Assembly: GCF_021869535.1 (NCBI RefSeq)
Contig: NW_026262701.1
Coordinates: forward strand, 4,464,001 to 4,528,000
Source: Mytilus californianus
Taxonomy: Eukaryota
Direction: 5' to 3'
Length of the DNA stretch: 64,000 nt
Under the pieces are notes generated by a model. The model saw only the letters and a list, made by a program, of their open reading frames with translations. It had not been told where the DNA came from and did no database searches. The translations under genes and the position numbers were made by a program. Below are positions 1,158 through 37,880 of this stretch, one piece after another; within the stretch, counting starts at the first letter, position 1, and each line of letters starts with the position of its first letter.

Positions 1158-1590
1158 TGTTATATAAACTGTTTTATTATTTCGATAAGGCAGATTGGAT
1201 TTAGTATTACGCTGAGCAGTTCCAGCTCTGTATAATTGTATTCCATGCTGAACTATTAAATCATATATCGCGGAAACTAGAGTCGTCATTTGTTGCAAGA
1301 GTAAGTCCCAGAGTCAGAGTTCGTGCAGACTCTTCTTATTGTCTATTGTGTGTGTGTGGTTGCAGGCCAACACACATCACCCAGTCACAAGAAACACCGA
1401 GTTTATAGTTGTGACATTTGGTGCCAGGTCCGGGTCGTGTTGACTCTTTAGCTCAACATGCTTTCCTGATACCTCAAAGCAGCAAGCGAGTTACCAGTTC
1501 CCAAGAGACGTACATATACATGTAACAGAGTTGCAGCGATGGAATACAACTTCAGGCCACAGTTGAGACCGTGGTTTTTCCAGATGCGTC
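1158..1590 (+). mobile_element. 5' end of an LTR retrotransposon: putative LTR (1158-1416), PBS (1419-1434) and short leader, truncated
   Basis: Segment starts TGTTAT and ends GTGACA. It is followed 2 nt later by TGGTGCCAGGTCCGGG, a TGG-initiated tRNA primer-binding-site pattern. A downstream ATG reads MEYNFRP, gag-like. No second LTR was found. Confidence 0.55.
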
Positions 1591-1591
1591 A

Positions 1592-2105: not shown

Positions 2106-2194
2106 TCTGTGATTGTGTTATATTTATGGATACATTGTCACAAGTCACTATAATAAACTATAATAATTTACTTACTTACTTACTTACTACTTAC

Positions 2195-2887
2195 TATTAT
2201 TTGTTTTCTTATTTGAATAAAATTTTTGGAATATTTTCTGTTCTACTGTTTTATAATTTCACCCAAGCTTTAATCATTTCTAAGTAAAAGGGTGTAACAT
2301 TATTTTCCAAATTCTCTATATCTTGTATTTTATCTATGTTCATATAAAAAATTAAAGTAATTGTTTCCTAGTTTATGAAAGTAGAAATGAGTAATAACTT
2401 TCCAGTTCGGTAACATATCATCATTCAATTTGTTAACTAATCTTTTAATCCAATATATTTCTAATGATTCAATATATTTATGTATATGAATCATGTTTAA
2501 TCCTCCGTTAGCATAGTTTGTACAAACAACAGATTTTTTAACCTTTTCTCTTTTTATTATCCCAGAAAAGTTATATATTATTTTTTAAACTTTGATATGT
2601 AGTCTTTATTAATATTGATTACTGATGCTAAGAAGGTTAAGTTTGGAACTATTAAAGACTTTACAACAGTTATTCTGCCTAAGATAGTAAGTTGTCTTTT
2701 AGACATATCTTTGATAATTTTCTCTCATTTAGTTAGTTGTTTTTCTAAGTTTAGTTTTTCACATTCAATCATGTTATGTCCAAAGTATACTCCCAAGCAT
2801 TTTATTGGCTTTGTTGACAAGCTTATATTTTGATATTTATCTTTACTTATTTTCAGATTTCCTAGCCAAATACCTTCTGTTTTATCT
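2195..2887 (-). mobile_element. Tx1/L1-like LINE ORF2, post-RT fragment
   Basis: Minus-strand translation gives TEGIWLG, LTILGRITVVKSLIVPNLTFLASV and PFYLEMIKAW, typical Tx1/L1 motifs, with stops and frameshifts. Confidence 0.8.
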
Positions 2888-11869: not shown

Positions 11870-13290
11870 TATAACTGCGAGTACTCTCAAATCGTACTTT
11901 CGTGTTATTTTGACCTGTTGATACAATTTGTAATGTATTTTTGTGTTTTAATGTTTACTTATTCAGTGTTATATCTAGACTCACTATGTTTAATATATAC
12001 CACCTTTGATAAGTGTTTAGTATGACGATAAATTTTCACTTTTGTTCCCGTACTAGGAACAACAAAATTATTTATTTTGTAAAAATTATTACCGTACTCC
12101 ATGTATACCTTACAACAAAATTATTTTTATTTACCTGTGTACGTTATTTCATTTGGCGGCATTTTGTCCAAGGTTATGTTGTCTTTCTGATATTGTTTTA
12201 CATCTAAATCCCTTGTTTTATTAATTTTGTATTTACATTTTGTCATAGATCAAAGTAAAAGGTTCGATAAGGCCCTAAAATGGCCCCTTTATTTAGCTTA
12301 AATTTAAAATTAGAATTTATTGACCAATATTACAATGAATCATAGCTAATACAGTGACTAGATAGGAAATAAGACTATTGTTTGACAATTAACGTTCCTG
12401 CGTTTTATTCAAGACGTCACAAATAGTACTCGTTTTGATTCTCCACGAAAAATCAATGAAAATGGCTAAATTTCCGTTGAGTATTGGACAGGAAACATAG
12501 AGCGCATATGTCGACAAAAAAGATCTTTGAAAACAATGTTTGTAATGACATTTTACATGTCTAACTTGAATATTTAGTTTGTCGACTCCTGCGCTGTATG
12601 TTTCCATGTCCTAAATTTAGCTGAAATCTGGCTGATTTTGTCAAATTTCGTCAAATCCCTTATTTAGACCTAATTGGGATGTAAAAATGAACGCCTTAGA
12701 AAAGAACTTTGACAGAAATATTTCTTTATAACTTTCTCACATGTCTTTTAGTCAACTTAAAACATTTTTTATCTTGTAACATTGAACTTAATAAATGGGG
12801 CCAAATATGGCCCTCATCGAACTTACTCCTTTATTCGTCCAGTTTATGTTCACATGTTTTTGTTAATATGTCTTTTGATTGAGTTAAGCCATTTCAATTG
12901 ATATTTTATAGTGTGTCTTTCTACGTTGTGATGTTACACTATTGTTTCAGGTAGGGTGAAGGTTGGCGCCTATTAAAACGTTTGAACCCGCTGCATTTGT
13001 TTGCACCTGTCCTATTTCAGGAACCTGATGTTCAGTGGTTGTCGTTTGTTGATGTGGTTCATAAGTGTTTCTCGTTTCTCGTTTTTTATATAGATTAGAC
13101 TGTTGGTTTTTCTGATTGAATGGTTTTACACTAGTCATTTTTGTGACCCTTTATAGCTTGCTGTTCGGTGTGAGCCAAGGTTCCGTGTTGAAGGCCGTAA
13201 TTTTACCTATAATGGTTTACTTTTACAAATTTTGACTTGGATGGAGAGTTGTCTTATTGGCACTCATACCACATCGTCTTATATCTATTT
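11870..13290 (+). mobile_element. RT-less 3' tail of the SECIS-bearing Naiad family, interrupted by a MITE
   Basis: Matches the reverse complement of 22130-22640 and of 35100-35400. Interrupted at ~12252-12833. Confidence 0.8.
12252..12833. mobile_element. MITE with ~30-bp TIRs (Kolobok-like AGG...CCT/TTAA context possible)
   Basis: Left GGTTCGATAAGGCCCTAAAATGGCCCC versus reverse complement of right end AGTTCGATGAGGGCCATATTTGGCCCC. The TSD is not clean. Confidence 0.7.
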
Positions 13291-13647
13291 ATATATACAT
13301 TTGTACATGTAGTAAAGCTAGAGTCTTTACTGATGGTTATTATTGAAGTTATAGAAAAGTTTGTATTGTTAACATTCCTTTATTTTATTTCAAAAACATG
13401 TTTATATTAAACTGAATTCAGTGGTGATTTCCATTCTAGATCATTAAAGGGTAAACAAAAGAAAGATAGAAAAGAAAGAAAGAAAGGGGAAAAAAGTTTT
13501 CTTAAGAAATCGAACATTCATTTATTCAAATGCAGATATTACAAAATTTTTTAGTTATTTCAATGTTTAACTTTCAACACAGCTCTAATCTACTAACTAA
13601 TTATCTTTTCTGGTAAAACACATACATTTAGATATAATATAAATTAA

Positions 13648-16600
13648 ATGGAAAAAAAACATCAATTCATATTGCTAGTTGGAATATCAATGGGTATACA
13701 TCAAAAGATTCTATTAAGTTTGAAGACCCAGAGTTTGTTAGTCTGGTCTCTGGTAAGGATATATTCTGTCTAATGGAAACTCATTGTGATTTGCAAAATT
13801 GCCTAAAAATACTCGAATTTGATGTGATTACTTAATTTAACTTAATTAGGCCTAAATCTCCAAGAAGTAGAAAGCGATCTGGAGGATTATCTATTTATAT
13901 CAAAAAAGATATTCGAAAAAGGGTAAAATTCCTTGAACATGAAACCAGTGATTACATCTGGTTAAAATTAGATAAAAAAAAATTTGGAATATCAAGATAT
14001 ATTTATATATGTTTCTTATATGACCCACCAGCGGAATCAACTTATAGTCGCCAATTAGATGCTGACATTCTCTCACTAATTGAGAAAGTTATTTCAAAAC
14101 ACTCCAAAGATGGGGATATAATATTGTCTGTGGATTTTAATGCCAGGACCAGAGATGTATCTGTCCTAATTTAAGGGGGTAGTTCAAATCACACACCCCT
14201 TTTTAATTCATACAGCCCCGATTTAGATTTACCCTCTAGAAGTAGTCAAGATAATATACTTTCTCAAAGGTTAAAATATTTAATTGATTTATGTATTCAA
14301 GATAAAATAAGAATTCTAAATGGTAGAACATTCGGAGATACTTTTGGACAGTACACCTCACATCAACCTACTGGTAGTAGTGTCATAGATTATCTCATTG
14401 TATCTGAATATTTAGTAAAATATGTTTCATTAATTCATGTACATGATTTTATTGGAACCAAGTCTGACCATTGTCAAATATCTATGATGTTAAATTGAAA
14501 TACTCTGTCAAATATGATTGTGACCTTGGTGGCTGTCCTCTTGAACCTCTTCCACTTTCGTATATATGGACAGATAACTCTTCTGCTGAATTCCAAAATG
14601 TGTTGTCTTCATTAGAAATTCAGAATGATCTGTCCAATTTCATGAAATTACATGTTGATCAAACAGAATCAGGAATTCTTTAATTAATAACTTTAATCAG
14701 GTAATTTATGATGTAGCAAACAAAAGTCTAAGAAAGAAACGTCATAGTTTGAAAAAATCTAATAAGAAAAAGAAAAAACCTAATTGGGAAAATCAATCTC
14801 TATCAGTCCTTAAAAAGCAACTTATTGATAAAGAAAATTTGTTTGAAAAAATCAATAAAGATCCATATATAAGATCATCTTATTTTAGTGCTTTAAAGCA
14901 TTATAGAAAATTTATGAAAACCACGATACGACTCTATAGACAAAATCTAGTAAATCAGCTTGATACTTTAAAAGATAATATCCAAAAGCTTATTGGAAAC
15001 TTCTGAATAAATTGTTAAGTGATGGTGGAGATTCTAGAAGACAGTCAGAAGACAATATATCAGCTGAAGAATGGTTGAACTATTTCAGGGAATTAAATAA
15101 TGAAAAAAACATAAATAACCAGGATCTAGATAAATTACTAGCTGAAGCAGAGAAATGTATACAATTTAATGAGCTTTATTTTAAAACTTCTGAAAACGAG
15201 GTTCTTGATGCACTGAAATCTTTGAAAAATAAAATAGCCTGCGGATTTGACCAAATATCAAATGAGATGTTAAAATATGCTTTTCTACATTTCTTCCAAC
15301 CCTTTTGAAAATATTTAATAATGTCCTTACTTGTGGAATTTTTCCTACGATTTAAGAACAAATTGGTTTCTCTAAAGGTAAAATGACAAGTGACCATCTT
15401 TTTGTCTTAAAAACTCTAATAAAGAAACACACACAAAAAGGCTTTGTTGACTTTAGAAGAGCTTTTGATACTGTTAATCAAACAGGACTGTTTTATAAAC
15501 TTAGTAAAATTGGAGTAGGAACCCGTTTTTATAATATAATCAACAGTATGTATTCTAATAACATACTATGTATAAAAACACGAAACATGTTAACAGCTGA
15601 CCTTAGATCATGTATTGGAGTAAGACAAGGAGATGATCTGAGCCCTAGTCTCTTTAAAATGTTGTTTAATGATTCTAAATCTTTATTAGATGAAACCTGT
15701 GACCCAGTATTGCTATCAAATATTTCACTAAATTGTCTTCTTTATGCTGATGATCTTGTACTGCTTTCTGAATCTGAAAAAGGCTTACAGACTGTATTAA
15801 ATAAGCTGGAAATCTATTGTGAAAATTGGGGTTTAGAAGTTAATTTGATAAAAACGAAATCTATAGTTTTTAATACATCTGGCCGTATTAAAGATGCACA
15901 GCTTTCACATAAAGACAAATACATCCAAAATACCCATCATTATACTTATCTTGGCGTAACTTTTAGTGCTTCTGGCAGCTTTTCAGAAGCCACAATATGT
16001 TATATAAAAAAGGGTTTAAAAGCTTTCTTTATATATACTAAATATTTTACTAATTATAAACCTAATATCTCCACTCTTATGTACATTTTTGATCACACAG
16101 TGAAATCCGTCTTATTATATGGTTCAGAAATATGGGGTTGTTTTAATTCGAAGAAGTTAAAGAATGATACAGAAGAACTAAATTATTTCTATAGACTTTG
16201 TAAAGATCTAAAAAAAAAAAAACGAGAAAGTGCATCTTAAATTCTGCAGATTTACATTAGGAGTGAATAAGCACGCAACAAATTTGGTCATATTTGGTGA
16301 ATTAGGTCGTTATCCTCTAATGTTAGATATTTTAACAAACATGATCAAATATTGGAAAAGAATTCATATTTCAAATAATATTTTATTAACAAATGCATAC
16401 TCTCTCTCAAATACATTATCAAAAGCTGGGAAGAATTCTTGGACTAGTTGTATTCATGCTATCCTGAAATTGCTTGATTTGTAAGAGTATCAAGTACTCT
16501 CATCTAAAACTAACATTAAGAATATGGTGAAAAAGAAATTATATTTAAAATATTGTTACATATGGAAAAAAGAATTATCCAATGATAAAAGACAAAATAA

Positions 16601-21281: not shown

Positions 21282-22129
21282 GTATAATGAAATGCTAGTA
21301 ATAACGATTCGGTGTATCGCATCTGTGGTTTTGCATAAACTACCTGTATCCAATAATTTCATATCTCATTCTTGAAGAATAGTAAAAAGTACCATTTAAA
21401 CTAATAAAAATGACTGTTGCTTTCAATTAGTATTCATTTTGTACAAACCACAAAATCCGGATTGTCCATACTAATCTCCATGCAATGCCATATATTAATT
21501 CAAATATTACAGCTAGTTACAAAGTCAAAATACTTTCTTCAGATGATGAAGGCAAAGATATTGGACACTTCGGACATTAAATATGTAAAAACCACAGCTG
21601 TAAAGTTGCATTCATCTATTAAAAAAGTGACCTATGTCACTTGTGAGGAGTCATTTCCACAAATAGTCCTTTCGAACAGAAAATGGAAAATTAAATATAT
21701 TTAATATAATAAAAGATAGAAACTATAAAATGAAGCACTATTGAAATGTTGATGCATGAACTGGCAAGAAGGTGAACACTACTAAATTTACACAGGCGAA
21801 TATGAATTCCATCTAAATTTAGCCTCAAAAGGGCTTCTTGTTTCCTTAGATAGACACCTTGAACATTGAAAATGCTTCTTATTCCCACATATAAACTTAC
21901 TTCATAAATAGTACAAACTAAACCAGATAGTTATTGATTGATTGTGTCTTGGGAAATCCTAAGTGATACATTAAGGGTAGTTCACACTTGATTCAATGAA
22001 TGCGAAAGGTTAAAACAAATACAAATGAACTTTGGTTCTCGTACTAGGAACAACAAAATTATTTATTTTGTAAAAATTATTTCCGTACTCTATGTATACC
22101 TTTTCTGAATATGTTATAGATATTTAAAA

Positions 22130-24940
22130 TAGGCGCCAACCTTCACCCCACCTGAAACAATAGTGCAACACCACAACACAGAAAGAGCCACTATAAAATA
22201 TCAATTGAAATGGCTTAACTCAATCAAAAGACATATTAACAAAACAAGTGAACATACATAAATTTGATCTATGACACAATGTAAATACAAAATTAGGGTT
22301 AAATGTAAAACAATATCAGAAAGACACCCATAACCTTGGACAAAATGCCACCAAATAAAACAACGTACACAGGTAAATAAAAATAATTTTGTTGTAAGGT
22401 ATACATGGAGTACGGAGATAATTTTTACAAAATAAATAATTTTGTTGTTCCTAGTACGAGAACAAAAATGAATATTCATCGTCATACTAAACACGTATCA
22501 AAGGTAGTATATATTAAAAATAGTGAGACTAGATACAACACTGAATAAGTAAACATTTAATAACAAAAATACATTACAAATTGCATCAACAGGTCAAATT
22601 AACATGAAAGTACGATTTGAGAGTACTCGCAGTTACTGAAAGCTAGTTAAAAGCCAAAAACAATTAATAATAAAAAATCATGCATCAGAGACTAAAATCA
22701 ACTAAAACACATCCCAGGGATTTAGTGTTTTAACGTCATGGACAGTCAAAGAAAACATGACTTATGCAATGCCAAAATAAAAGTATCGACAGGCAGTAGG
22801 ATAGTTAGTAGTTAATCTGTTAATAAATATGTATAATGTAATATATAGATAGAGTAATCTCTATATAGAAAATGAACGTGGATGTGTATTTATACATCCC
22901 AAAAAAAACCTTTGAAAAGAATACAAGTTTAGTTATGTTTTAATTTGCTGACGACCAAATCGATATTTGTGCCAATGTAAACTATATTCAAAGATCTAAT
23001 TACAACATTGGTAAGATAACCTTTAATAATAAGTTTGTTTAAAGGTTCGATGAGTTTACACGGATCACATAGTGATTTCCGCGCTTTTAGTACAATATTA
23101 CCGTAAAATTTAGGATGTGAAATACCGTTTTTAATAAGTTTTCTACAGGTACAGCCAAATTTACTAATCAAATCTTTGTATAAAGAATTTAGTAAAAGTT
23201 TTTAGTAATTTATGGTAACAAAATCCCTGACTTAATAATTTACCAGTGATGAATTGATTACGTTCGTTAAAATCTATGACATCACTACACACACGGGCAT
23301 AACGAACGAGTTGGGATATATAAACACCGTATGATGGAGCCAAAGAAACATCGCCGTCTAAAAAAGGAAAATTAACAATAGGGAATGAAAAATCGTCTCT
23401 TTTGACGTAAATTTTAGTATGGGGTTTCCCTTTAAAAATTGAAATGTCTAAATCTAGAAAAGGACAACTACTGCTGTTTACGTTAGATTTATTTAAAGTA
23501 AGTTCCTTTGGATACATTTTGGTAGTATATTTAGAGAGCTCTGGATTATTTAACGAAAAAATATTATCAAGATAACGGTAGGTATTGTTGAATGTATCAA
23601 CCAAATGTAACAATGACGTCTTTACTGAGTTTGGTCATAAACTGAGATTCATAGCAATACAGGAATAAATCTGCTATTAAAGGGGCGCAGTTAGTGCCCA
23701 TAGGAATACCTACTACCTGTCGATACATTTTATCGCCGAAACGTACATATATGTTGTCCAGGAGAAAATTTAAAGGTTCAGTCATATCTTCACATTTCCA
23801 GTAAGTGTATCTAGCATACTTTCCTTTTTCGTTACAACAAATAAATTTGCAATGAGATTTTTCAAAAGACCATTTAATTAAAAAAATATGAAAACTTTTT
23901 CTTGATAAGATTGTGTGGAAGTGAAGTGTAGAGAGTAGAAAAATCATAACTGTCAACAGAATTAAAAGGACCATCAAAAGCACGTATTTTATCTAAAACC
24001 TCTAATGAATTTCTAACACTCCAAAAATAATTGATACCAAAAGTTATTAACAAGTCCTTTGATAGTAGTAAAGGAGGTAGTTAGAAGCACTGACAGATTA
24101 GTAGTAGAACACTTATAAGATACGGAGATGAAACGGAATTTAAATGGTTGTTTGTGTAATCTAGGTAACCAGTACATAGTCGGGACTTTCAAATGTTCGG
24201 AAGAGGCTTTAAGTTGGGTAGTGGCAGTGCTATGCTTGTTTACAATTTGACTCTCTGTGGAGCGTACCGACCTGAATGTAGACGAATTGATAATTTAGTT
24301 TTGGAGAACTTCCGTGTAGTATATGCGTCACATCACCACTACATTATTGGCTGCTTTGTCTGCCGGTACGACCACAAACCGCTTTGCGAGTACTTGGAGT
24401 TTATTTTTTATGCTAGAAATAGACATATCATGGTCCCAATTATTAATTTCAGAATTTTCAAAATGAGATTTACGAATATCAACAGTATTCATAATTTTAT
24501 TCAAATAACTGTCTTGAGATTTTTTATCAGGTTTTTCACGTTTACACCAATTTTTACAGTAGGCAGACAAAGCGTCTTTAATGACCTGACGACACTGTTT
24601 CCAATCTATCAAAGATGGAAGACGATATTTAGGTCCTTTCTTAAGAAAAGTTTTGACCTCACGGTCTTCGACAATGTTGAGGTCTCCTGTAATGACATGA
24701 CCATAGGGAACATATCTAAAACTAGATGTTTCACAGTCTCAAGTGGAAGAAGCATTATTTTCTATATTGACGTCTGTTGTAACTGACGTATAATTAAAAA
24801 TCAAACTTCTGCTGGTTTTTTTTTTATAAGAATACGAAATAATAGGTGGTTCTGTATTATCAAAATATGGAGGTATTTGACTTTGGATGGTAGAGTCATT
24901 GAATATATTAGATAAGTTAATAAAATCAATACCTCTATTT
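22130..24940 (-). mobile_element. Naiad Penelope-like element, 3' half: linker (UxC motif), RT and 3' UTR with SECIS
   Basis: Reads NRGIDFINL...[25 protein letters not shown], then PADKAANNVVVM*RIYY, SYDFSTLY, GIPMGTNCAPLIADLFL, YRYLDNIF and KRDDFSFPIVNFPFL. Stop at 22929. It also has frameshifts and one TAA. Confidence 0.92.
22690..22747 (-). promoter_or_regulatory. SECIS element (type 2)
   Basis: Minus strand: AUGAC-GUUAAAACAC-UAAA-UCCC U GGGA-U-GUGUUUUAGU-UGAU. This gives the AUGA/GA kink-turn core, a fully paired 10-bp helix II (two G.U), apical AAA, a mini-stem, and helix I GACUG/UAGUC. Confidence 0.85.
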
Positions 24941-27350
24941 ACCAGACTGAAGCTAGCGAACAATAAGCCAGCGAACAATAAGAAATACGCGCCAAACTGA
25001 TCACGCCTAAACACCGAAGACTTATTTTAACATAAAACATCCTTTGAAATCTGATGACAATCATTTCCAGTAGGAAGACGAAATGCTATACATTTTCACA
25101 AAGACAAAATTGATTTTTTTATTTATATAGATATTTAAAACAACATAATTTTTCTTAACAGCCGAGCATCTCTTATAGGATTTTCAAAATTAATTTTACA
25201 ATGTAGCTACTCCTCTCCCTTTTGATTACCTTTGATTACAAACGTCTGTCTTTATAATAATGAAAAACATGATAAAAGTAGACCATACTTATCTAGTGTA
25301 AAGATGAAATTAAATCCACATACTGATATATACCGTTTTTGGAACGTCAAGTACAGAATTTTGCATCCAGAATTATTAGTTGAAGTAAAAGCTAATAAAT
25401 CTCCACAGTGTTCGTTTTGGTACGATTGAACAATTTATTTATTACATTTCAATAGGAAATGTGTTTTATGTGACAGTGACACACAAGTAGCACGATATAT
25501 GAATTGATGAAGATATTAGCTAATTTAACCGACAAAATCTTCAAATCCAAGATTATTACAGCTTTTCCAAAAAGGCAAGTCCCTTGCACTGATTCGAATT
25601 AACAAGAAAAGGTTGGAATCACAACAATACGAACTATTTCAGTTTCACATTTGAACAATTATCGGGGAACGGTCCAAAATTGGGGTATGGTTACCCGACC
25701 CCCTCCCTACTTTAATTCATAAAAAAAAGTCTCTACGGCAAAACTTTTGTCCACACTTGATACAAATGATAGGCATTTGCCTAGGGTTGCCTAGACCCAA
25801 AGACCCAGGTGGGTACAGTCACAGATCGTCCATAACTGAGGTCCAAAGTTAGGGTATGGTGACCCGACCTTTTCCTACTTTAATTTATAAAATAAAGTCC
25901 TTACGGCAAAGCTTTTGTCCACACTAAATACAAATGATAGGCAATTGCCTAAAGTTGCCTTGACCCAAAGACTCAGGTGGGTAAAGTTACGGATCGTCCA
26001 CAACTGAGGTCCAAAGTTGGGGTATGATGACCCGACCCCCTCCCTACTTTAATTCATAAAAAAGTCCTTACGGCAAAGCTTTTGTCCACACTAGATACAA
26101 ATGATAGGCAATTGCCTAAGGTTGTATGGAACCAAAGACCCAGGTGGGTAAAGTTGCGAATCGTCCATAACTGAGGTCCAAAGTTAGGGTAGGGTGACCC
26201 AACCCCCTACCTACTTTTATTCATAAAAAATCCTCACGACAAAGCTTTTGTCTATACTAGGTACAAGTGATAGACAAGGCCCTGAAGTTGCCCGGACTAC
26301 ATGGCCCAGGTGGGTAAATTCACGGAACTTCTTTACCAGAGTTCCAAAGTGTGGGTATGGAGACCATACCCTCCCTAACTTTAATTCGTAAAAAAGTTCA
26401 TACGTCAAAGCTTTTGTCCACACTAGGTACAAATGATAGGCAATTGCCTAAGGTTGCCTTGATCCAAAGAGCCAGGTGGTTAAAGCTACGGATCTTCCAC
26501 AACTGAGGTCCAAAGTCGGGGTATGATGACCCGACCCCCTCCCTACTTTAATTCATAAAAAAGTCCTTACGGCAAAGCTTTTGTCCACACTAGGTACAAA
26601 TGATAGGTAATTGCCTAAGGTTGTATGGAACCAAAGACCCAGGTGGGTAAAGTTACGAATCGTCCATAACTGAGGTCCAAAGTTAGGGTAGGGTGACCCA
26701 ACCCCCTCCCTACTTTTATTCATAAAAAATCCTCACGACAAAGCTTTTGTCCATACTAGGTACAAGTGATAGACAAGGCCCTGAAGTTGCCCGGACTACA
26801 AGGCCCTGGTGGGTAAATTCACGGAACTTCTTTACCAGAGTTCCAAAGTGTGGGTATGGAGACCATACCCCTTCCTAACTTTAATTCGTAAAAAAGTTCA
26901 TACGTCAAAGCTTTTGTCCACACTAGGTACAAATGATAGGCAATTGCCTAAGGTTGCCTGGATCCAAAGAACCAGGTGGTTAAAGCTACGGATCTTCCAC
27001 AACTGAGGTCCAAAGATGGGTATGGTGACCCGACCCCTCCCTACTTTAATTCATAAAAAAGTCCCTACGACAAAGCTTTTGTCCACACTAGGTACAAATG
27101 ATAGGCAATTGCCTAAGGTTGCCTGGACCCAAAGAGCCAGGTGGTTAAAGCTACGGATCTTCCACAACTGAGATCCAAAGTCGGGGTATGGTGACCCGAC
27201 CCCCTCCCTACTTTAATTCATAAAAAAGTCCCTACGGCAAAGCTGTTGTCCACACTAGGTACAAATGATAGGCAATTGCCTAAGATTGTCTGGACCCAAA
27301 GACGCAGGTGAGTAAAGTTTAAGATCGTCCACAACTGAGGTCCAAAGATG

Positions 27351-27984
27351 GGTATTGACATGAATAGCAATTATATGGTCATTTTTATAAATTTCCTGTT
27401 CACAAAATTATATTTTTTTTGAAAAACTAAGGATTTTCTTATCCCAGGCATAGATTACCTTAGCCGTATTAGGCACAACTTTTTGGAATTTTGGGTCCTC
27501 AATGCTCTTCAATTTTGTACTGGTTTGGCTTTATAACTATTTAGATCCGAGCGTCACTGATGAGTCTTAGAAAGACGAAACGCGCGTCTGGCGTATTAAA
27601 TTATAATCCTGGTACCTTTGATAACTATTTATACCACAGGGTCGATGCCACTGCTGGTGGACGTTTCGTCCCCGAGGGTATCACCAGCCTAGTAGTCAGC
27701 ACTTCGGTGTTGACATGAATATCAGTTATATGGTAATTTTAGTAAATTTCCCGTTGACAAAACATTAAATTTTTCGTAAAACTAAGGATTTTCTTATCCC
27801 AGGAATAGATTACCTAAGTCGTATTTGGCACAACTTTTTGGAATTTTGGGTCCTCAATGCTCTTCATCATTGTACGGGTTTGGATTTATAACTATTTAGA
27901 TCCGAGCGTCTCTGATGAGTCTTAGGAAGACGAAACGCGCGTCTGGCGTATTAAATTAAAATCCTGGTATCTTTGATAATTATT
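27351..27984 (+). ncRNA. Non-LTR retrozyme insert (~1.8 x 355-nt monomer) with two type I hammerhead ribozymes
   Basis: GCGTCA-CTGATGA-GTCT TAGAA AGAC-GAAAC GCGC GTC-TGGCGT. Cores are at 27557 and 27912 (355 nt apart), with predicted cleavage after 27588 and 27943. Confidence 0.9.
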
Positions 27985-28557
27985 AAGGTTGCCTGGACCC
28001 AAAGAGCCAGGTGGGTAAAGTTACGGATCGTCCACATCTGAGGTCCAAAGTTGGGGTATGGTGACCCGACCCCCTCCCTTCTTTAATTCATAAAAAAAGT
28101 CCTTACGGCAAAGCTTTTGTCCACACTAGATACAAATGATAGGCAATTGCCAAAGGTTGCCTGGACCCAATGACCCAGGTGTTTTAAGTTACGGATCGTC
28201 CACAGATGAGGTCCAAAGTTGGGTTATGGTGACCCGACCCCCTCCCTACTTTAATTCATAAAAAAAAGTCCCTACGACAAAGCTTTTGTCCACACTAGGT
28301 ACAAATGATAGGCAATTGCCTAAGGTTGCCTGGACCCAAAGAGCCAGGTGGTTAAAGCTACGGATCTTCCACAACTGAGGTCCAAAGTCGGGGTATGGTG
28401 ACCCGACCCCCTCCCTACTTTAATTCATAAAAAAGTCCCTACGGCAAAGCTGTTGTCCACACTAGGTACAAATGATAGGCAATTGCCTAAGATTGTCTGG
28501 ACCCAAAGACCCAGGTGAGTAAATTTAAAGATCGTCCACAATTGAGGTCCAAAGATG

Positions 28558-29144
28558 GGTATTGACATGAATAGCAATTATATGGTCATTTTTATAAATT
28601 TCCTGTACACAAAATTATATTTTTTTTGAAAAACTAAGGATTTTCTTATCCCAGGCATAGATTACCTTAGCCGTATTTGGCACAACTTTTTGGAATTTTG
28701 GGTCCTCAATGCTCTTCAATTTTGTACTGGTTTGGCTTTATAACTATTTAGATCCGAGCGTCACTGATGAGTCTTAGAAAGACGAAACGCGCGTCTGGCG
28801 TATTAAATTATAATCCTGGTACCTTTGATAACTATTTATACCACAGGGTCGATGCCACTGCTGGTGGACGTTTCGTCCCCGAGGGTATCACCAGCCTAGT
28901 AGTCAGCACTTCGGTGTTGACATGAATATCAGTTATATGGTAATTTTAGTAAATTTCCCGTTGACAAAACATTAAATTTTTCGTAAAACTAAGGATTTTC
29001 TTATCCCAGGAATAGATTACCTAAGTCGTATTTGGCACAACTTTTTGGAATTTTGGGTCCTCCGAGCGTCTCTGATGAGTCTTAGGAAGACGAAACGCGC
29101 GTCTGGCGTATTAAATTAAAATCCTGGTATCTTTGATAATTATT
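28558..29144 (+). ncRNA. Second retrozyme insert (duplicate) with two hammerheads and a 47-nt deletion
   Basis: Hammerhead cores at 28764 and 29072 (308 nt apart). The sequence is offset 1207 bp from the first insert. Confidence 0.9.
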
Positions 29145-30099
29145 AAGGTTGCCTGGACCCAAAGAGCCAGGTGGGTAAAGTTACGGATCGTCCACATCTG
29201 AGGTCCAAAGTTGGGGTATGGTGACCCGACCCCCTCCCTTCTTTAATTCATAAAAAAAGTCCTTACGGCAAAGCTTTTGTCCACACTAGATACAAATGAT
29301 AGGCAATTGCCTAAGGTTGCCTGGACCCAATGACCCAGGTGTTTTAAGTTACGGATCGTCCACAGATGAGGTCCAAAGTTGGGTTATGGTGACCCGACCC
29401 CCTCCCTACTTTAATTCGTAAAAAAAAGTCCCTAAGGCAAAGCTTTTGTCCACACTAGGTACAAATGATAGACAATTGCCTAAGGTTGCCTGGACCCAAA
29501 GACCCAGGTGGGTAAAGTTACGGATCGTCCATAACTGAGGTCCAAAGTTAGGGTAGGGTGACCCAACCCCCTCCCTACTTTAATTCATGAAAAAATCCTT
29601 ACGACAAAGCTTTTGTCCATACTAGGTACAAGTGATAGGCAAGGCCCTGAAGTTGCCCGGACTACATGGCCCAGGTGGGTAAATTCACGGAACTTCTTTA
29701 CCAGAGTTCCAATGTGTGGGTATGGAGACCATACCCCTTCGTAACTTTAATTCGTAAAATATTCCGTATGACAACGCTTTTGTCCATACCATGAACAAAT
29801 GATAGGCAAAACAATGAAGATGTCCAGACTAGATAACAACCATAAGCTATGGTTTCAGTTTGGCTAGACAAAAGGCTAAGTTTGGTGAAATAACTTCTCT
29901 TTTGACTATCCCCTTTCAAGTTCATTTGATAAAAAAATGCTTACGACAAAAATTTTGTCAACATCATATACAAAAAACTATGCAATGGACTAAGGCTGCC
30001 CGGACCTGAAGGTCCTATTCGGTTAGGCCTACACCAGAGGTCAAAATTTTTGGTTCTGGTCAGACTACCCTCGCTTAAATTTAATTACAATTAATTTGG

Positions 30100-31150
30100 A
30101 GACCCTTAAATGATTTAATGATATATTTTTTTATGAATAAAGGATATTTCCAAACGAATCAAGGTTATCTTCAACGAAATTAAGGTTGACATTAAACGAA
30201 TTACGAATATCACTAATTCATTAAAGGATGTCAATAATAACAATGATGTTGCATTATGGGATTTCAATAAATGCATTCTTTAAAGATATTTTAAATCATA
30301 TATTGATATACTTAAATGGAGTATTGTTGCATTTAGGTATATCAATTAATATACATGTATAATTTTATTCCTTAAATGATGTATTGATATCCTCAAATGA
30401 ATACGAACACGGATATGAATTAAGGAAATTGATTCAGCAAGAATTTGCGATATCCTGAAATAGTAAAAGGATATCCTGAATTATGTATGGATATCCTTCA
30501 ATGATTTATTGTATCCTTTACGGAATTATGTGTGTGTAGGTATATCTTTAAGTGTATAATTATTTTTTTTTAAATTATTTATTGGTATCCTAAAACGAAT
30601 AAAGGATATCCACAAGTCACTTCATCATTTAAAGATAGCTTTATATAATATAATAATACCCACAAATTAAGGAGAACGGATAGTACCTAATCAGGAATTT
30701 GTGATATCCTGAAAAAATTAAAGGATATCGTGCATTGATTTAGTGTATTCTAAAAATTAATAAATCCTGTAAGGAAATAGGAATATCCTTAAATCACATA
30801 ATGTGTTCATTATTCCATTACAGCATATTCATAATTATCTTCAATAGGGTTTATGATTATTCATTTTCAAAAAATATTTTAGATGGTAGATGAGTACTGT
30901 AAATCCTTAAATGAAAATTTATTTTTTCAACTTTAAATATTTTTAGATATTTTTTATCATTAATGATATCCTAATTCAAACAGATTAGGGTATTACATTT
31001 TGATTGTATAATATCCTTTAATTCTTTATTGATATCCCAAAGAAAAGCTCTACAGTTGTAAGTCTGTCTGTAATCGATGTTGACAAAGCAACTTTTACGT
31101 AGTTTTTATCAATTTAATGATGGATATCCTATATTGATTGAAGAACATCT
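30100..31150. repeat. Degenerate AT-rich repeat built on (A)AGGATATCCTT-like palindromic cores
   Basis: Many variants are present, e.g. TAAAGGATATTTCC, AAAAGGATATCCTG, TGGATATCCTTC, TAAAGGATATCCAC and GGAATATCCTTAA. Confidence 0.6.
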
Positions 31151-31814
31151 TGTGATCAAATGATATCCATAAGGTATATTTTTAAATGAGATTGGCGTTT
31201 ATTGGACAGAAGGGTTAAAGAGAACGTCCGAAAATTCCAACGCAAAGGCAGTTGGAGATGTTCGGAAATGATAAGTATCTAGAGATTCAACTGAACAATT
31301 TTAAATTGCTAGCATGAAGTCTCCATTGCACTTCTACAACAACTCACACAAGAGGATCAATTTTCAACGTGAACAAGGATCCGGATTACTTTATATCAGT
31401 TAATCATCATGAAGATTTGGATCAGAAGTTGATTAACCGAAATGACAAGTACAAGAAAAGGGAGAACGAGTTTAAGTTCGATGTTACCAGTCTCACTGAA
31501 GGTGATGTATTGAACGGATATATCAATTTTAAAGTATTCTTTTACACAGGTGAAGACAACAGTTATAGTGTATCCTTCGAGGATATCAAGGAATGTGAGT
31601 ACAAGGCATGCGGACCGCATAATTCTGACAAACGCCCAAAACTGATTACTGCTGGGTGTGAAATACTTATCACGTCTCTAAACATCGCAAATAGCAGAAC
31701 ACATCAAGTTGTAGACGGGATGGACATAAACAATCATAAACATGACAATCATCGATCAATAAGGGTCCATTTCACTCTTACACGGGCTCAAATCCTTTGT
31801 GGAAGATTGTCAAA

Positions 31815-32600
31815 TGTCAATTTTTACCAAACAATGCAGTACAAACATCACACACCTTCGCGCCTCTGCTATAACGTCAAATGTCAAAGGGTGTTATCAA
31901 CAGAATGAGTTCGAACGATCCAACATCTAGAAGATTTACCGCACCCAGAAATACATATGAATTATAACCAATGAGACAAGAAACGATTAGACTCTAGAAT
32001 AGACTGTCACATTTACCGAAAACCATTTAAAAATAACACCGTCGTGATCACGATCATCTTACTGAAAAAATATTTCGGGATCCACTGAACAATCGTAATT
32101 TAGAGTATCACCTCCTGAGATTTGTGCCCATCGTCTTTAATTTTTCTAGTAGAGCGGGTTCGATGCATATATCTGTTCTTAAAGAACCGGCACTTGTCAT
32201 GATGGGACATATTGAGGTTATTTGAAGGAAACCTCAACTGCATATCAAATTGCAAATGCCAAGTACATCGTCTTCTCGTTATAGTGGGGACTACATATGA
32301 GATGCATCATTCGTTCAAGTTAATGGTGAACTCGCTGGAAACTGACAAAGAAGTTGGCAAAGGATCAGTTAAAATATGTGAAGATGTATGGTGAACACTA
32401 CAAAAACCAAACGAAAAACATGCTTATAAAGTACTTGACATGTTCGAGTTTAAAACTATCACAACCTTATCTAGAGTCGACGTGATGATGTCTTACATAT
32501 TTGAAAACTTCATGCATTTTTGTTTGAACCCGCATGGTAGTACGGGACTGGTTAACGACGCAGAGCACAGGACCACAGGGGTCAAACTTGAAAATCAAAA
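31815..32600 (+). pseudogene. Polinton/Maverick protein-primed DNA polymerase B remnants (heavily deleted)
   Basis: Frame-broken motifs in the expected order: QYKHHTPSRLCYNVKC; DCHIYRKPFKNNTV-RDHDHLT-K-FR...NLEY..RFVPIVF; GNLNCISN...SFKLMVNSLET; KHAYKVLDMFEFKTI-HNLYLESDV..IFENF..TGVKLE. Confidence 0.8.
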
Positions 32601-32707
32601 TTAAAACACTAAATACATTGTATGCAAATCTGACTGAGATGGATTCAGCTACTTATTTATTTATGATCACAGAAAGTTAATCATCTATCGAATGTTTTCA
32701 GGGGGAC

Positions 32708-33010
32708 GATGTATACCTATACGAGCCTCTATCCGGTAATCCCGTTACCAGTTCTAGTTCTGATGTGGAGATACGAAACAGCATCGATACGCAAGACTGT
32801 TCGTCAGATAGTTATATCATTGTAGATGGTCGAATTCAGAAGAACGACGAGATGGCGCATGCTGATGCAGATTAAGCGACACTCATGAACAATGGTATAT
32901 TGTAATTACTCAAAAGCATCGACTAAAAACTGCCTGAACAGCATTTATGCTCTACCATTTGTTGCTACTACCATCTTAGGACTGATTATGGGTCAAAGCA
33001 TAAACTGACT
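32708..33010 (+). pseudogene. Polinton/Maverick major capsid protein N-terminal remnant
   Basis: YEPLSG...EIRNSIDTQD...SYIIVDGRIQK...AHADAD*ATLMNNGIL*LLKSID*KL then ATTILGL. This matches the remembered Polinton MCP pattern YEP.TG..EIRI.I.TQD..SY..IEG...TL.NNG.M.LF..I.Y.L..GQATTMLGL. Confidence 0.75.
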
Positions 33011-33379
33011 TTCGTGCACTTTTCCGACATTAATGCAGCGCTACGATCAGTCGCCGTCAAGAAAGTGACAAAGACTGTCACGAGCAAAATGTGTTGGTTC
33101 TCTTCTCGCGTCATTCCCTCCGACGACAACATGGAGAAAAAGATGAAACTGTCCATGATAACAAGACAAGTAAGACTCAATCTGATTAAAATCAGATCTT
33201 TGATTTTGCTCCGTTTGATTTGTTTTTCGCTCGTGTAAGATATGAATATACCCCAAATAATGTGTTCATTTTCGGATAACCTTTTAATGCAAGTTCTAAA
33301 TCAGCCAATCATTTCGAATTACACTCTGGCACTTTGATTATAATTTTCTCCTAAAATCATATATTAAAGCAATTTCTTT

Positions 33380-33592
33380 TACAATTACATGTGTTTTCAC
33401 ATGAGTGCTTACATCTCATACTTTCAAAAGAACTTGAGATTGAGGATACTACCGAAAGCAGAAGGTCTAATTCATACATTGACCTTTTCTACGATAATGA
33501 CACAGACGGAGGACGACTTCAAACTAGAATATATGATAAACGTGTTGATTTCAACTTTCCAAATTTCATCAGTAACATACCCCTTTCCAATC
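33380..33592 (+). mobile_element. Naiad/PLE RT C-terminal fragment (different subfamily) abutting the right TIR
   Basis: SKELEIEDTTES..SYIDL...LQTRIYDKRVDFNFP. Confidence 0.75.
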
Positions 33593-33808
33593 AAAAATCA
33601 ATTTCGTCGTGAAAATGTGTAGCATTTCGTCTTCCTACTGGAAATGTTTGTCATCAGATTTGCAAAGGACGTTTCATGTTAATATAAGTCTTCGGTGTTT
33701 AGGCGTGATCAGTTTAGCGCGTATTTCTTATTGTTCGCTGGCTTATTGTTCGCTAGCTTGCTACACCCTATTGTTCGCTGGCTTATTGTTCGCAAGCTTG
33801 AGTCTGGT

Positions 33809-35400
33809 CCTCTATTTATATATTTTAATTTAAGAAAATGCCGTTTGTGATTTTCAGGTTTATCGATCATAGGAAACAGCCTGTGATGAACAAAGGCTGT
33901 AATAATACGGGTGTATTCATACAACGGGCAAAAAAATGAAATTTTATCCCACTCCTGAAAAATAGCATATAATTTACTCCAGTTTGCATAATACTTGATG
34001 TCTACCATTATTTTTTATATAGATAACAGATCAGCAAGTGTATAATTTATACGATGTTTAATGCGTTGATTACGGTTTTTGCGTTTACCATGAGACCTAT
34101 TATTTCTTAGTCGTTTATCGACAATATTAATGACATCGACAGAAGTTTTAGATATGTTCCCCTGTCCCAATATTTTGTCATTGAGACCGAGAGGATAAAC
34201 TGTTTGAAGTCTTTTTATCCAAAATAGTTCGCGAATCAAATTGCTTGTGTGATTGTCCTGGTTGTTTCTGAACGTGGTTGGAATTTTATAAATTTTAGAT
34301 TATGATTATGCTTATCTAAATGTTGGTTTATCAAACTTCTGTAATATTCTCGTCCCGTCTGTCCCACATATTGAATACCACACTTAGGCTGGGTTCAAGT
34401 TACCACATATATAAGGTTTTGAGTTTTTCAGGTAATGTCACAGGAAAAGGAGAGTGAAAAAGCTCTCCCGTTCACAGTTGACCTAACAGTATTTTGTGAA
34501 GTTTATCTAAAACAGGTAAGTAATTTTTTGGCATTGCACGGGGAAATTTTTTTTAACAATCTGGCTGCAGAGGCATTACAAATACGTTTGTTTAATCACG
34601 TGGATATCCTAGAAGTTATGTTGTTATTTAATTTCTTTCCATTACGTAAAATCGTGATAATTTAAATACGGGTATAGGCAAAATATAAAAGACCGGAGGT
34701 TGTAACATAGAATAAGGATCACACTCACGGAATAAGAAATAATTGGCAAAGCAGTAAAAGAACTCTTACAAAAACTGTTATAAAAAGCCCGACGTAAAGA
34801 CTTAAGTAATACAAAACAGACATATAACAAACACAGGACAAAAACAGAGATCGTCAGAAATCTAAGTAAAACCATAGCAGGGGGCAATAATAGAAATAGC
34901 AAGCGTGGATGAGTATTTATACATCCAAACACTATAATATTTAATTAACAATTAAGAACAAAGATATAATAAACATATGAAAGCTCTCTAACAGGCAAAC
35001 AACCCATAATTGTAAAATATAAGGGCATACACCACAAGCACGGGGACACATTCTACTGTATCCACACAGCACGAGTAACAAACCCTGCAGTAAATATATA
35101 TATAAGAAGATGTGGTATGAGTGCAAATGAGACAACTCTCCATCCAAGTCACGATTTGTAAAAGTAAACTATTAAAGGTAAAAGTACGGCCTTGGCTCAC
35201 ACCGAACAGCAAGCTATAAAGGGCCACAAAAATTACTAGTGTAAAACCATTCAAACAGGAAAACCAACGGTCTAATCTATATAAAAAACGAGAAACAAGA
35301 AACACTTATGAACCACATCAACAAACGACAACCACTGAACATCAGGTTCCTGGACCAGGACAGGCGCAAACAAACGCAGCGGGCCCAAACGTTTCAAATA
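33809..35400 (-). mobile_element. Naiad Penelope-like element, 5' half: upstream tail copy (pseudo-LTR), 5' UTR and N-terminal GIY-YIG endonuclease
   Basis: CDIT*KTQNLIYVVT*TQPKCGIQYVGQTGR (34442-34350) and RELFWIKRLQTVYPLGLND. The EN lies N-terminal to RT. A copy of the family 3' tail sits upstream at 35100-35400. Confidence 0.88.
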
Positions 35401-35989
35401 GAGACCACATGACATAAAAGTTAACAACTATAGGCCACCGTACGACCTTCAACAAAGAGCAAAACCCATACCAAATAGTCGGCTATAAAAGGCCCCGAAA
35501 TAACAAATAATTCAAACGAGAAAAATAAATGCCTGATTTATTTACAAAAAATGAACAAAAAAAAATATGATATACATCAGCAAACGACAACTACGGACAT
35601 ACATGCTACTGACTTGGTTAGTTTGGTGAATAACTAAAAGACAACCAATAAACACGTTTAGCGGTGTCTTAAGTCAATCGTTTCCTTTATGCACTTAACT
35701 GACTTGAAATTAATTCATATATGTACTAAAAACTATTTACAAATATTTTATTAAGTCACCATATACATTAAGAAGCCAATTCATATTGATAATGATTTCT
35801 GAAGAACCCATTTTCATAAAATGTTAAACAAACTGTATTGTCAACGCCAAGCTATACTAGTAATTTCTAACAACCACATCATTTTAACTGGTGGATAGTC
35901 GTCTCATAGGTAATAGTACCGAATCTCATTTTTCATTGTACTTACTTAATGATACTTAATGACGTTTTCCGGTACAGGTTCTTTTTCAC

Positions 35990-37880
35990 CAGACTCATAT
36001 ATTGAATTATTATCTCTATTATTTCTGTTGCTGCTTCCGGTTATTTCAGCTCGATAATCAGAATAATAGATTTCTTCGGATTCCCAGTAATTATCTAATC
36101 TATTTATAAACGAATTTATAGATGGAGCTTTTGTTATTTTATCTGGTAATTTATTCCATAATTATGGCAATTCTTACTGTAAAGCTATTGTTCCTCAGAC
36201 TTGTTTTAAATCGTTGGTGAATAATTTTGTTACTATTAACTCTTGTGCTATGCCTATTTTCGGTGTTTGAAATTAGTTTGAGAAATGTACTAGTTTCTGG
36301 ATCATATTTTCCGTTTAGTATCTTGTATGTCTCAATCATGTCTCCTCGGACCCTTCTATATAACAATGTTTGGCAGCTTAAGTTTTTTCAGTCTTTCTGG
36401 ATAACCTGATTTGTTGAATCCAGGTATCTGGCGTGTCGCCCTTTTTCTACATTTTCGATTTTGTCAATGAGTTTCTTTTTGAAAGGTGCCCATACTGAAC
36501 TAGCAAAGTCTAAGTGTGTTCTCACTAATGTTTTGTATAGTGGTATGAAGATCTTTGCATTTAAATTTTTAAATGTTCTTCTAATTGCCGCAAAGATTGA
36601 GTTAGCTTTGTTCACTTTTTCGCATATGTGTTTTTCAAAGGTTAAATCTTCGTCTATAACTACTCCAATATCCTTCTCTTCACTGCATTTGATAATATCA
36701 TGACCTAATAGATTGTAAGTTGTGCTGTCATCTCTTACCCCTCTGCTTATATTTATATGTTTACATTTTTCTGCTTGGAATTTCAAGAGCCATGTATTAC
36801 TCCATTGTTCTAAATTTTTTAAGTCGTTTTGCAGTATAGCTTGGTCTGCTTTGTTTTCAATGATTTTAAAGATTTTAGTGTCGTCCTCAAATAAGTAGGC
36901 ATCCGATGTGACGCAATCTGGCAAGTCATTTATGTATAGAACAAATAACAGGGGGCCTAGTACTGAGCCTTGGGGTATTCCAAATGTTACATCTTTCCAC
37001 TCTGATGTTTCCCCATTCACTGAAACTCTTTGTTTTCTATATGACAGAAAATCTGTTATCCAGTCTAAGATTGGATTTATTATCCCAAATTTCTCAATTT
37101 TCTTTACGAGTCGCCTGTGTGGTACTTTATCAAAGGCTTTCATGAAATCAGTGTATATGCAATCAACCTCATGGCCATTATATATAGCTTCTGTCCATTT
37201 ATCTATTACCTCTAGTAGTTGTAGTGTTGTTGATCTTCCAGAAATAAAACCGTATTGTTTATTTGAAAATAATTTATTTCTTTCATATAGCTAATAATAT
37301 GTTCTCTTATAATTTTCTTCATAATTTTGCTAGCCACTGATGTAAGGCTTACTGGTCGGTAGTTTTTTGCTTGTGGTTTATTCCCTTTTTTGAAGACTGC
37401 ACTCACTAGGGCGTTTTTCCAATCCTTTGGGACTACTTTTGGGGTTAATGATTGGCTAAAAATTATGCCTAGTGGTTCAGCTATACCTTCCTTGACTTCA
37501 AACAACAGTCTGGGGTGTAGGTTATCAGGGCATGGAGATTTATCTGTTTTTATTTTCTGAAGGTGCTTCAATACTAAATCAGTGCCAATATTTAATTCCT
37601 GTATTTTGTATTGTATTGTGATATGTTTAGGTTCCGGGATATTGCCTTGGGGTTCATTTGTAAATACACTAATAAAATACTCTGATAATATTTCAGCTTT
37701 TTGTTTGTTATCATCCGTTTTTTCAGATTTTACATCTTCCGAGTCAACATGTAGGTCACCTATACCTTCTATTGTGCTAACATACAGATTGTTTTCAGAG
37801 AGTATAGTCCATATTATTCAGTTTGATACACATATTCCTGTTTGAAATATTTACCTGTTTTTAAAATTTACATTAATTAA
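35990..37880 (-). mobile_element. 5'-truncated CR1-clade LINE (RT), decayed
   Basis: KSPCPDNLHPRLL, NYRPVSLTSV, KAFDKVPHRRL, GIPQGSVLGPLLFVLYINDL, LFEDDTKIF and DIGVVIDEDLTF. Confidence 0.9.

Follow-up and report, generated by a model that had tools for sequence, protein, structure and literature searches.

A dead copy of a Naiad-type Penelope-like element (PLE) whose family very probably encodes a selenoprotein lies on the minus strand of a 64,000-nucleotide (nt) stretch of the Mytilus californianus genome (contig NW_026262701.1, positions 4,464,001 to 4,528,000; the whole stretch, which contains no runs of N, is hereafter called the window). The element occupies positions 22128–35397 and consists of two arms separated by a foreign transposon of 8.87 kb. 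In living members of this family, a single open reading frame (ORF) of ~1000 codons carries five in-frame UGA codons, each replacing an invariant cysteine (Cys) of a putative metal-binding motif; a selenocysteine insertion sequence (SECIS) in the 3′ untranslated region (UTR), ~145–180 nt past the UAA, would recruit the selenocysteine (Sec) machinery of the host, and the ribosome would read the five UGAs as Sec to yield the full endonuclease–reverse transcriptase (EN-RT) protein. The copy in the window kept four of the five TGAs and then lost its start codon, the catalytic Asp of the RT and its frame, and it was split by the insertion. The conservation of the UGAs on invariant Cys positions, the selected ORF and the 3′ SECIS together point strongly to recoding of the five UGAs by the mussel Sec machinery into one EN-RT selenoprotein.

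In-frame UGA codons at conserved cysteine positions

Four in-frame TGA codons had been reported in the initial annotation of this stretch, and all four were confirmed on the minus strand; that count holds for the window copy, and the family has five, the 5′-most of which has mutated to TTA (Leu) in the window at 34523–34521. Numbered from the 5′ end of the ORF, site 1 (34521–34523) is the second Cys of a CX4CxxC motif (PCNAKK[U]LTC) and is TGA in all six of the other copies that cover it (six of seven overall). Site 2 (34428–34430; SCDIT[U]KTQNLIY) is the Cys just before the GIY motif, and site 3 (34395–34397; VVT[U]TQPKCGIQYVGQT) is the first Cys of a CCHH finger, located between GIY and YIG; both are TGA in 8/8 copies. 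Site 4 (24739–24741) is the first Cys of the CxC motif, PST[U]DC, which reads ST[U]DCETS in the window, and site 5 (24328–24330; ADKAANNVVVM[U]RIYY) is the Cys 8 residues after the DKA motif; at each of these two positions, 13/13 copies have TGA. Between sites 4 and 5, 136 codons (24738–24331) are free of stops, in agreement with the open frame described earlier for this interval.

In an alignment of five Sec-type lineages and 14 full-length Cys-type Naiads, in which the TGAs were marked X or U, the columns of sites 1–5 contain Cys in 12/12, 12/12, 12/12, 14/14 and 14/14 of the Cys-type sequences, respectively, which bears out the earlier placing of the TGAs on Cys positions. About 10 columns of this alignment are conserved Cys, and the family ORF retains 28 ordinary TGT/TGC codons elsewhere. 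When the frame is set by the intact relative L006, the window copy has seven internal stop codons, four of which fall in 4 of the ~10 invariant-Cys columns, out of ~1000 codons; by a rough estimate, the chance of four stops landing on invariant-Cys columns is well below 1e-5. The sister element with TGT that had been proposed within the window was also found: a 5′-truncated Cys-type Naiad fragment at ~2900–4300 (+), with ~42% protein identity to the Sec element, reads PADKASNNIVFICKSYY and has TGT at the position 8 residues after DKA (DKA+8; ~3029–3060). No SECIS was detected near this fragment in the Rfam scan of the 64 kb.

A family search with the 136-amino-acid (aa) piece between sites 4 and 5 as the query retrieved database ORFs that stop exactly at ...ADKAANNVVVV. 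Twelve related contigs (L001 and L005–L015), which stem from other samples and belong partly to an NCBI assembly and partly to metagenome assemblies (Baltic, ocean-sampling and others), are ~84% identical to the window copy in this piece and ~91% identical at the nt level over the ORF. Half of them (L006–L010 and L012) maintain one frame of ~1000 codons that starts at the first ATG and closes with a TAA, without any internal TAA or TAG; from an upstream TAA to this final TAA, the only stops in the frame are TGAs, all at the five sites. In the comparison that had been set beforehand to separate fixed from private TGAs, TGA was found in every related copy covering a site, and TGT or TGC in none; the presence of TGA in the other family copies at every site covered indicates that the four TGAs of the window are ancestral to the family.

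In one assembly, ERZ6864376, the family copy L005 occurs together with a PPP1R3 gene of the Mytilus type (L020), which supports the assignment of the intact copies to mussel DNA in plankton metagenomes. In the window, an intronless host gene at 58377–59783 (+) was recognized as PPP1R3/glycogen-binding subunit 76A-like with a CBM_21 domain; its product matches an NCBI protein at 100%, that of M. coruscus at 98.4% and those of M. edulis, M. trossulus and M. galloprovincialis at 94–95%, which places the host in Mytilus, nearest to M. coruscus. Exact matching of other window ORFs against the protein collection gave no hit. Some of the records that hold animal retrotransposons of this type are prokaryote-like or metagenomic: L006 is contig JACSEI010000309.1 of GCA_014845165.1, and P0408 and P0430 belong to metagenome-assembled genomes (MAGs) of Candidatus Thiodiazotropha. 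These contigs are probably bivalve host DNA that contaminates the bins.

A SECIS downstream of the ORF

The SECIS claimed in the initial annotation corresponds to a full-length match to Rfam SECIS_1 at 22688–22749 (−), which scores 34.7 bits, begins 180 nt past the terminal TAA, and shows the AUGA core, the AAA motif and the 3′ UGAU, with a mini-stem after the AAA bulge (type II-like). The E-value of this match is 2.5e-4 in a search of 4.2 kb and 0.0038 in a search of 64 kb, and it is the sole SECIS match in the window. At the Rfam gathering threshold, no SECIS was reported in the window (34.7 versus 35 bits); the match was recovered in a permissive scan. A pattern search identified the same elements (AUGA, AAA and 3′ (U/C)GAU) at the homologous place in 12/12 related copies, and a pooled permissive Rfam scan of 13 loci, in which the filters tighten with more sequence, gave L005 alone. 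Matches to SECIS_1 with divergent sequences were also found in three further lineages, each at the ORF end: in L019 (28.8 bits, 3 nt past the TAG), in L017 (26.5 bits, overlapping the ORF end, as in the published Naiad-Mmer) and in a copy from Pinctada imbricata, L018 (39.3 bits, above the gathering score). Minimum free energy (MFE) folding of the Mytilus SECIS copies gave z-scores of −0.9 to −2.4, which are weakly discriminating, as expected for a kink-turn motif. Six SECIS sequences from four lineages, aligned with MAFFT and analysed with RNAalifold, aligned poorly and without regard to structure, and they are not counted here as evidence of covariation.

Selection and decay of the window copy

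Compared codon by codon with L006, the window copy shows a synonymous divergence (dS) of 0.295 and a nonsynonymous divergence (dN) of 0.054; the dN/dS ratio of 0.18 indicates that the window and L006 lineages parted as working genes and that the TGAs were kept. Between L003 and L006, dS is saturated. The first in-frame ATG of the family (position 479 of L006) corresponds to 34653–34655 (−), where the window copy has ACG (ATG to ACG at 34655). Other lesions of the window copy are a change of YLDD to YLDN at 23580–23557, by which the catalytic Asp of the RT is gone, the change of TGA to TTA at site 1, eight frameshifting indels, and TAA codons at 34505 and 24297; the TAA stops and frameshifts ascribed to decay in the initial annotation are thus present. 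A private change of TGC to TGA was observed at 34596–34598 (−) in a Cys codon of the N-terminal leader (...SRLSTCINKR... in the family). This TGA is probably a decay mutation, and it is still another Cys-to-TGA step in a putatively Sec-coding lineage.

Alternative explanations of the in-frame UGA codons

Programmed Sec insertion, as proposed in the initial annotation, is supported at the level of sequence by family-wide TGAs on invariant Cys positions, otherwise open frames and a conserved SECIS. Several points weigh against it. The window copy is certainly non-functional; the host of the intact copies is assigned indirectly, assemblers may have merged many copies into one contig, and the start of the family ORF is simply the first in-frame ATG. 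The SECIS scores of the window copy and of L005 (34.7 and 34.3 bits) lie just below the Rfam gathering score of 35, the intact copies score 28.4 bits (the value of L001) because they have CGAU instead of UGAU as the 3′ core, and the SECIS lies 145–180 nt past the stop in the mussel family versus 1–21 nt in the published families. Sec insertion itself is deduced from sequence, and this, together with the several scores under the gathering cutoff, also leaves room for the reading that the conserved UGAs are read through without Sec, by near-cognate insertion of Cys, Trp or Arg or by another programmed read-through, with a hairpin that is incidental or otherwise used; moreover, five Sec residues per protein would be inefficient by the usual mechanism. 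However, full-length coding-strand matches to SECIS_1 at the end of the ORF are retained in four divergent lineages, in one of them with a score above the cutoff, and the match in the window is unique in 64 kb. The combination of UGA in place of Cys with a SECIS in the 3′ UTR is the standard signature of eukaryotic selenoproteins, and molluscs decode the many UGAs of selenoprotein P (SelP) processively (Baclaocos 2019, cited in PMC8557442). Read-through without Sec is therefore considered quite unlikely.

The decayed state of the window copy, with its eight frameshifting indels, two TAAs, lost ATG and private TGC-to-TGA change at 34598, would fit a decaying pseudogene in which the four TGAs arose as private nonsense mutations, their coincidence with Cys reflecting the fact that Cys codons are one step from TGA. 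Yet the same TGAs occur in all other copies covering them, including copies without any other lesion over ~1000 codons, they persist across a dS of ~0.3 at a dN/dS of 0.18, and they are accompanied by the conserved SECIS. Private mutation was rejected on the basis of the TGA-only stops in the intact copies and the per-copy codon table, and it retains hardly any credibility. If the UGAs were instead genuine terminators, the element would produce several short polypeptides or only the first of them, the downstream parts being re-initiated or unexpressed, and the ORFs of 277, 55 and 462 aa into which gene callers break the element agree with such a reading. The breaks, however, fall inside the GIY-YIG and zinc-finger-like motifs and exactly on invariant Cys columns; the pieces are all in one frame, the segments between the TGAs are under purifying selection as one ORF, and the segment that precedes site 2 lacks a separate start codon. 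Termination at these codons thus appears highly improbable.

Relationships and origin of the Sec-type lineages

Of the database representatives (one for each cluster at 50% identity), 73 span the DKA region, and 25 of these stop exactly at the DKA+8 Cys position. All 25 lie in one clade of 30 rows, supported by a value of 91 in the Shimodaira–Hasegawa-like approximate likelihood ratio test (SH-aLRT), and their distribution requires 4 state changes versus ~21 with shuffled labels. In the full-length tree, the five Sec-type lineages group together apart from the 14 Cys-type Naiads (SH-aLRT 100). Within the Sec clade, TGA is found at site 5 in 5/5 lineages and at sites 2 and 3 in 3/3 lineages whose sequence reaches them. 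At site 4, TGA is restricted to the Mytilus family and the Pinctada imbricata copy, which are not sisters, and L003, L016 and L019 have Cys; at site 1, TGA is restricted to the Mytilus family. This pattern across the clade suggests one origin followed by further, partly convergent conversions of Cys to Sec. Related RT ORFs, taken irrespective of their Sec sites, form some clusters with thousands of members in large genome assemblies, and relatives also occur in contigs labelled as MAGs of lucinid-clam symbionts.

The initial annotation had allowed that a mussel lineage could be either a further origin of Sec-coding Naiads or an extension of known ones. The single Sec clade favours the latter, namely that the mussel family extends a single Sec-Naiad clade of bivalves, the published clam families being compared by their site descriptions; the mussel family would then share its Cys-to-Sec transition with the clam families. 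A further origin, i.e., an independent, third transition in the mussel family separate from the clam lineage, is less favoured and seems unlikely. Recurrence is possible in principle, as independent origins in spiders and clams were inferred by Craig et al. (PMC8557442), the mussel SECIS lies much farther from the stop, and the CxC site turned to TGA separately in the Mytilus and Pinctada branches. On the other hand, the five Sec lineages, including both Mytilus and Pinctada, form one clade with an SH-aLRT of 100, the 25 rows stopping at DKA+8 fall in a single 30-row clade with 4 rather than ~21 changes, the three core sites are identical to the clam sites, and the relatives in lucinid-clam symbiont MAGs also speak for a shared transition.

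Structure of the element and its assignment to Naiad

The motif architecture of the element is diagnostic for the Naiad clade of PLEs (Craig et al., 2021; PMC8557442). The 5′ arm (33809–35397, −) comprises a 5′ region shared with the tandem or pseudo-long terminal repeat (pLTR) junction of the family, the N-terminal leader, the CX4CxxC finger, the GIY-YIG domain with the CCHH finger, and a linker rich in Lys and Arg (KR-rich); the 3′ arm (22128–24940, −) comprises the end of the linker, the UxC (CxC) motif, GPKY, DKA, the RT, the terminal TAA and the 3′ UTR. The N-terminal GIY-YIG domain (NLIY...IQYVGQTGR...ELFWIKRLQTVYPLGLND; 34407–34177) is located upstream of the RT motifs (23948–23389) on the same strand and, once the arms are rejoined, in the same frame. 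In the motif map (all on the minus strand), the KR-rich block DKRLRNNRSHGKRKNRNQRIKHR (34119–34051), the CxC motif [U]DC (24741–24733) and the GxKF/Y motif KKGPKYR (24642–24622) all lie between the EN and the RT, the arrangement required of Naiads. They are followed by the DKA motif PADKAANNVVVM (24366–24331), which has DKA in place of DKG in the window copy, as ADKA occurs in nearly all homologues. The RT motifs appear in the order YDFSTLYT (23948–23925), GIPMGTNCAPL (23710–23678), YLD(D/N) (YLDN in the window at 23580–23557, YLDD in the family) and KRDDF, and the ORF ends at a TAA (22929–22931) that is common to the intact family (3482 in L006). The spacing from YDFSTLYT to GIPMGTN (RT3(A) to RT4(B), the region of the insertion in the fingers domain, IFD) is ~86 aa as measured in L006.

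The two putative fingers are best seen in the family copies, in which the first reads PC-NAKK-U-LT-C (CX4CxxC) and the second reads U-TQPK-C followed by EHLYRF...QHLDKHNH (CCHH); a 48-nt deletion takes away part of the His region of the CCHH finger in the window copy. When the window element's own pieces were searched with Pfam, no domain reached significance, as the GIY-YIG domain is interrupted by the TGAs and the RT of PLEs is divergent. In Cys-type full-length homologues, Pfam GIY-YIG (PF01541) was detected above the cutoff at the N-terminus (P0035, residues 86–169; P0047, residues 23–75).

The pseudo-LTR/tandem arrangement typical of PLEs is visible in the relatives: in L006, the 3′ end is followed directly by a second copy of the 5′ region (repeat period ~4.44 kb), and L016 holds two tandem units. 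In the window, a diverged partial repeat of the element occurs at 35416–35615 (−), and it is one of several other fragments of the Sec-Naiad family (3′ end/pLTR), which match L006 at 68–93% and lie at 12866–13291 (+), 11872–11957 (+), 8250–8441 (−), 56366–56414 (−) and 35416–35615 (−); these five fragments contain no SECIS detectable in the Rfam scan of the 64-kb window. Naiads are described as lacking a canonical hammerhead ribozyme, and Rfam scans found no hammerhead in 22128–24940 or 33809–35397, all four hammerhead matches being situated in the insertion. Naiads are also described as favouring (TA)n or other microsatellites as insertion sites; the flanks of this one copy, at 22127 and 35398, are AT-rich, and neither is a clear microsatellite.

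The 8.87-kb insertion and other repeats in the window

The transposon that separates the two arms (24941–33808; 8,868 bp) is foreign to the Naiad and has terminal inverted repeats of ~170 nt with 93–95% identity, which contain an internal short repeat; its first letters are ACCAGACT and its last letters AGTCTGGT. It is flanked by a 9-bp direct target-site duplication, AAATAGAGG, with the downstream copy at 24932–24940 and the upstream copy at 33809–33817. Alignment with L006 by blastn places the rejoining of the arms: positions 7–1431 of L006 match 35147–33809 of the window at 81.9%, and positions 1422–3808 match 24941–22559 at 85.9%, so that the match continues straight on from 33809, with an overlap consisting of the duplicated bases. 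Positions 4186–4503 match 35397–35094 at 82.5%, and positions 4048–4187 match 22270–22128; from the L006 alignment, the ends of the Naiad were placed at ~35397 and ~22128, practically the limits 22130–35400 of the initial annotation. With the insert and one copy of the duplication taken out, the arms read ...KYINRG|IDFINLS... in frame. The L006 alignment and the target duplication thus uphold the proposal, made in the initial annotation, that rejoining across an 8.9-kb insertion gives one frame with an N-terminal GIY-YIG, a CxC linker and an RT.

No transposase was found in the insertion (one inner ORF was scanned), and the insertion looks non-autonomous. The combination of a 9-bp duplication and long inverted ends is Mutator-like in character. 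Arrays of a 167-bp satellite lie inside it at 25671–27352, 27984–28559 and 29144–29809 (82–89% matches, up to 10 copies), alternating with hammerhead units. The four matches to Rfam Hammerhead_1 (type I) are located in its core of 42% GC, at 27551–27594, 27906–27949, 28758–28801 and 29066–29109 (+); their scores, 33.6 and 29 bits, lie below the gathering score of 34, and they are spaced by ~355 and 1207 nt. These units look like tandem retrozyme-type repeats, which are known from mussels. Near the end of the insertion, at 33427–33585 (+), lies a short fragment of another PLE RT, which shares ~38% identity with that of the Sec element. Elsewhere in the window, RVT_1 ORFs at 15383–16240 (+) and 36388–37143 (−) belong to other retroelements, similar to long interspersed nuclear elements (LINE-like).

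Implications for selenoprotein-coding transposons

The known selenoprotein-coding transposons come from one paper that described two clam and two spider families; a Mytilus family and a copy from Pinctada imbricata are added here, and the details that are new are the five UGAs, the UxC site and a SECIS located farther from the stop. The results point to a Sec-Naiad clade much larger than the published families indicated, with stop-at-Cys Naiads making up ~1/3 of the nearest database representatives. One scenario, to which we would give somewhat less than an even chance, is that Sec-Naiads constitute one old, very abundant, bivalve-wide clade, present in mussels, pearl oysters and clams, in which metal-binding Cys residues were converted to Sec stepwise: three core sites are shared, the CxC site was converted twice, and the CX4CxxC site was converted in Mytilus. 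If this scenario is true, five Sec residues would be the most for any transposon, the activity of a major repeat family of mussels would depend on the selenium and Sec machinery of the host, and the genome would hold thousands of portable SECIS elements with the potential to convert host genes to selenoproteins. Any tie of transposition to selenium supply is speculation. In the clade, the replacement of Cys by Sec in zinc-finger-like motifs can be followed as a natural, stepwise series, and new host selenoproteins could plausibly draw their SECIS elements from such a mobile source.

Sec-Naiads also have consequences for genome annotation, as pipelines split them at the UGAs, translate UGA as Trp, or fuse them to host gene models, leading to systematic misannotation in bivalve genomes. 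In L005, the gene at 1077–2219 (P0165) has TGA in the DNA at 1248 and 1662 and W at both positions in the stored protein, and the same applies to P0168 and possibly to P0002, P0021 and P0090; the W in P0165 indicates that metagenome gene callers used a TGA=Trp code on eukaryotic contigs. In the Pinctada imbricata assembly GCA_033119305.1, the model KAK3096272.1 (P0027; L018, 5001–53631) is a protein of 1911 aa with RRM and Tudor domains and a Naiad fragment at its end. This model terminates exactly at the DKA+8 TGA, so that the chimeric annotation of a host gene with a transposable element is attributable to the Sec codon.

Comparison with known Sec-Naiads, Cys-type Naiads and selenoprotein P

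The published Sec-Naiads were listed only from two clams and two spiders and contain 3–4 UGAs; Naiads of M. galloprovincialis were analysed in the same study, and more Sec families were predicted in bivalves (Craig et al., 2021; PMC8557442). In the literature collection that was searched, there was no report of Sec-coding Naiads in mussels. The likeness of the mussel family to these elements was judged from the published site descriptions, according to which the equivalents of sites 2 and 5 are Sec in all four Sec-Naiads and the equivalent of site 3 is Sec in the clam families (PMC8557442). The clam families thus resemble the mussel family in Naiad architecture, bivalve host, 3′ UTR SECIS and the UGAs that correspond exactly to site 2 (preceding GIY), site 3 (opening the CCHH finger) and site 5 (DKA+8) (PMC8557442). 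They differ in having three or four UGAs, whereas the mussel family has five: the additional site at the first Cys of CxC is unreported for any published family, and that at the second Cys of CX4CxxC has been reported only in a spider family (PMC8557442). Conversely, a UGA at RT6(D) is present in Naiad_Scon and absent from the mussel family. The clam SECIS lies 1–21 nt past the stop or overlaps it, in contrast to 145–180 nt past it in the mussel family, and the clam hosts are heterodonts, whereas the present host is a pteriomorph mussel. The spider families Naiad_Sdum and Naiad_Smim share with the mussel family the UGAs at the Cys before GIY and at DKA+8, and Naiad_Sdum has a further UGA at the second Cys of CX2-5CxxC, like mussel site 1; however, the CCHH finger of the spider Sec-Naiads contains no UGA, the IFD is missing from chelicerate Naiads, and a separate origin was inferred by the authors (PMC8557442).

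The Cys-type bivalve Naiads, including those of Mytilus galloprovincialis (Craig et al., 2021) and the fragment in the window, have the same domain order and motifs (GIY-YIG, CxC, GPKY, DKA and RT) and are abundant in mussels, but unlike the Sec element they have TGT/TGC at all five sites. Outside the transposons, bivalve selenoproteomes and a SelP with multiple UGAs are established. Mollusc SelP is similar to the mussel Naiad in that several UGAs per mRNA are decoded as Sec in bivalves, a decoding described as processive (Baclaocos 2019, as cited in PMC8557442); it is, however, an unrelated host protein in which Sec serves selenium transport, whereas in the mussel family Sec would replace the zinc-finger-like Cys residues of a transposon enzyme.

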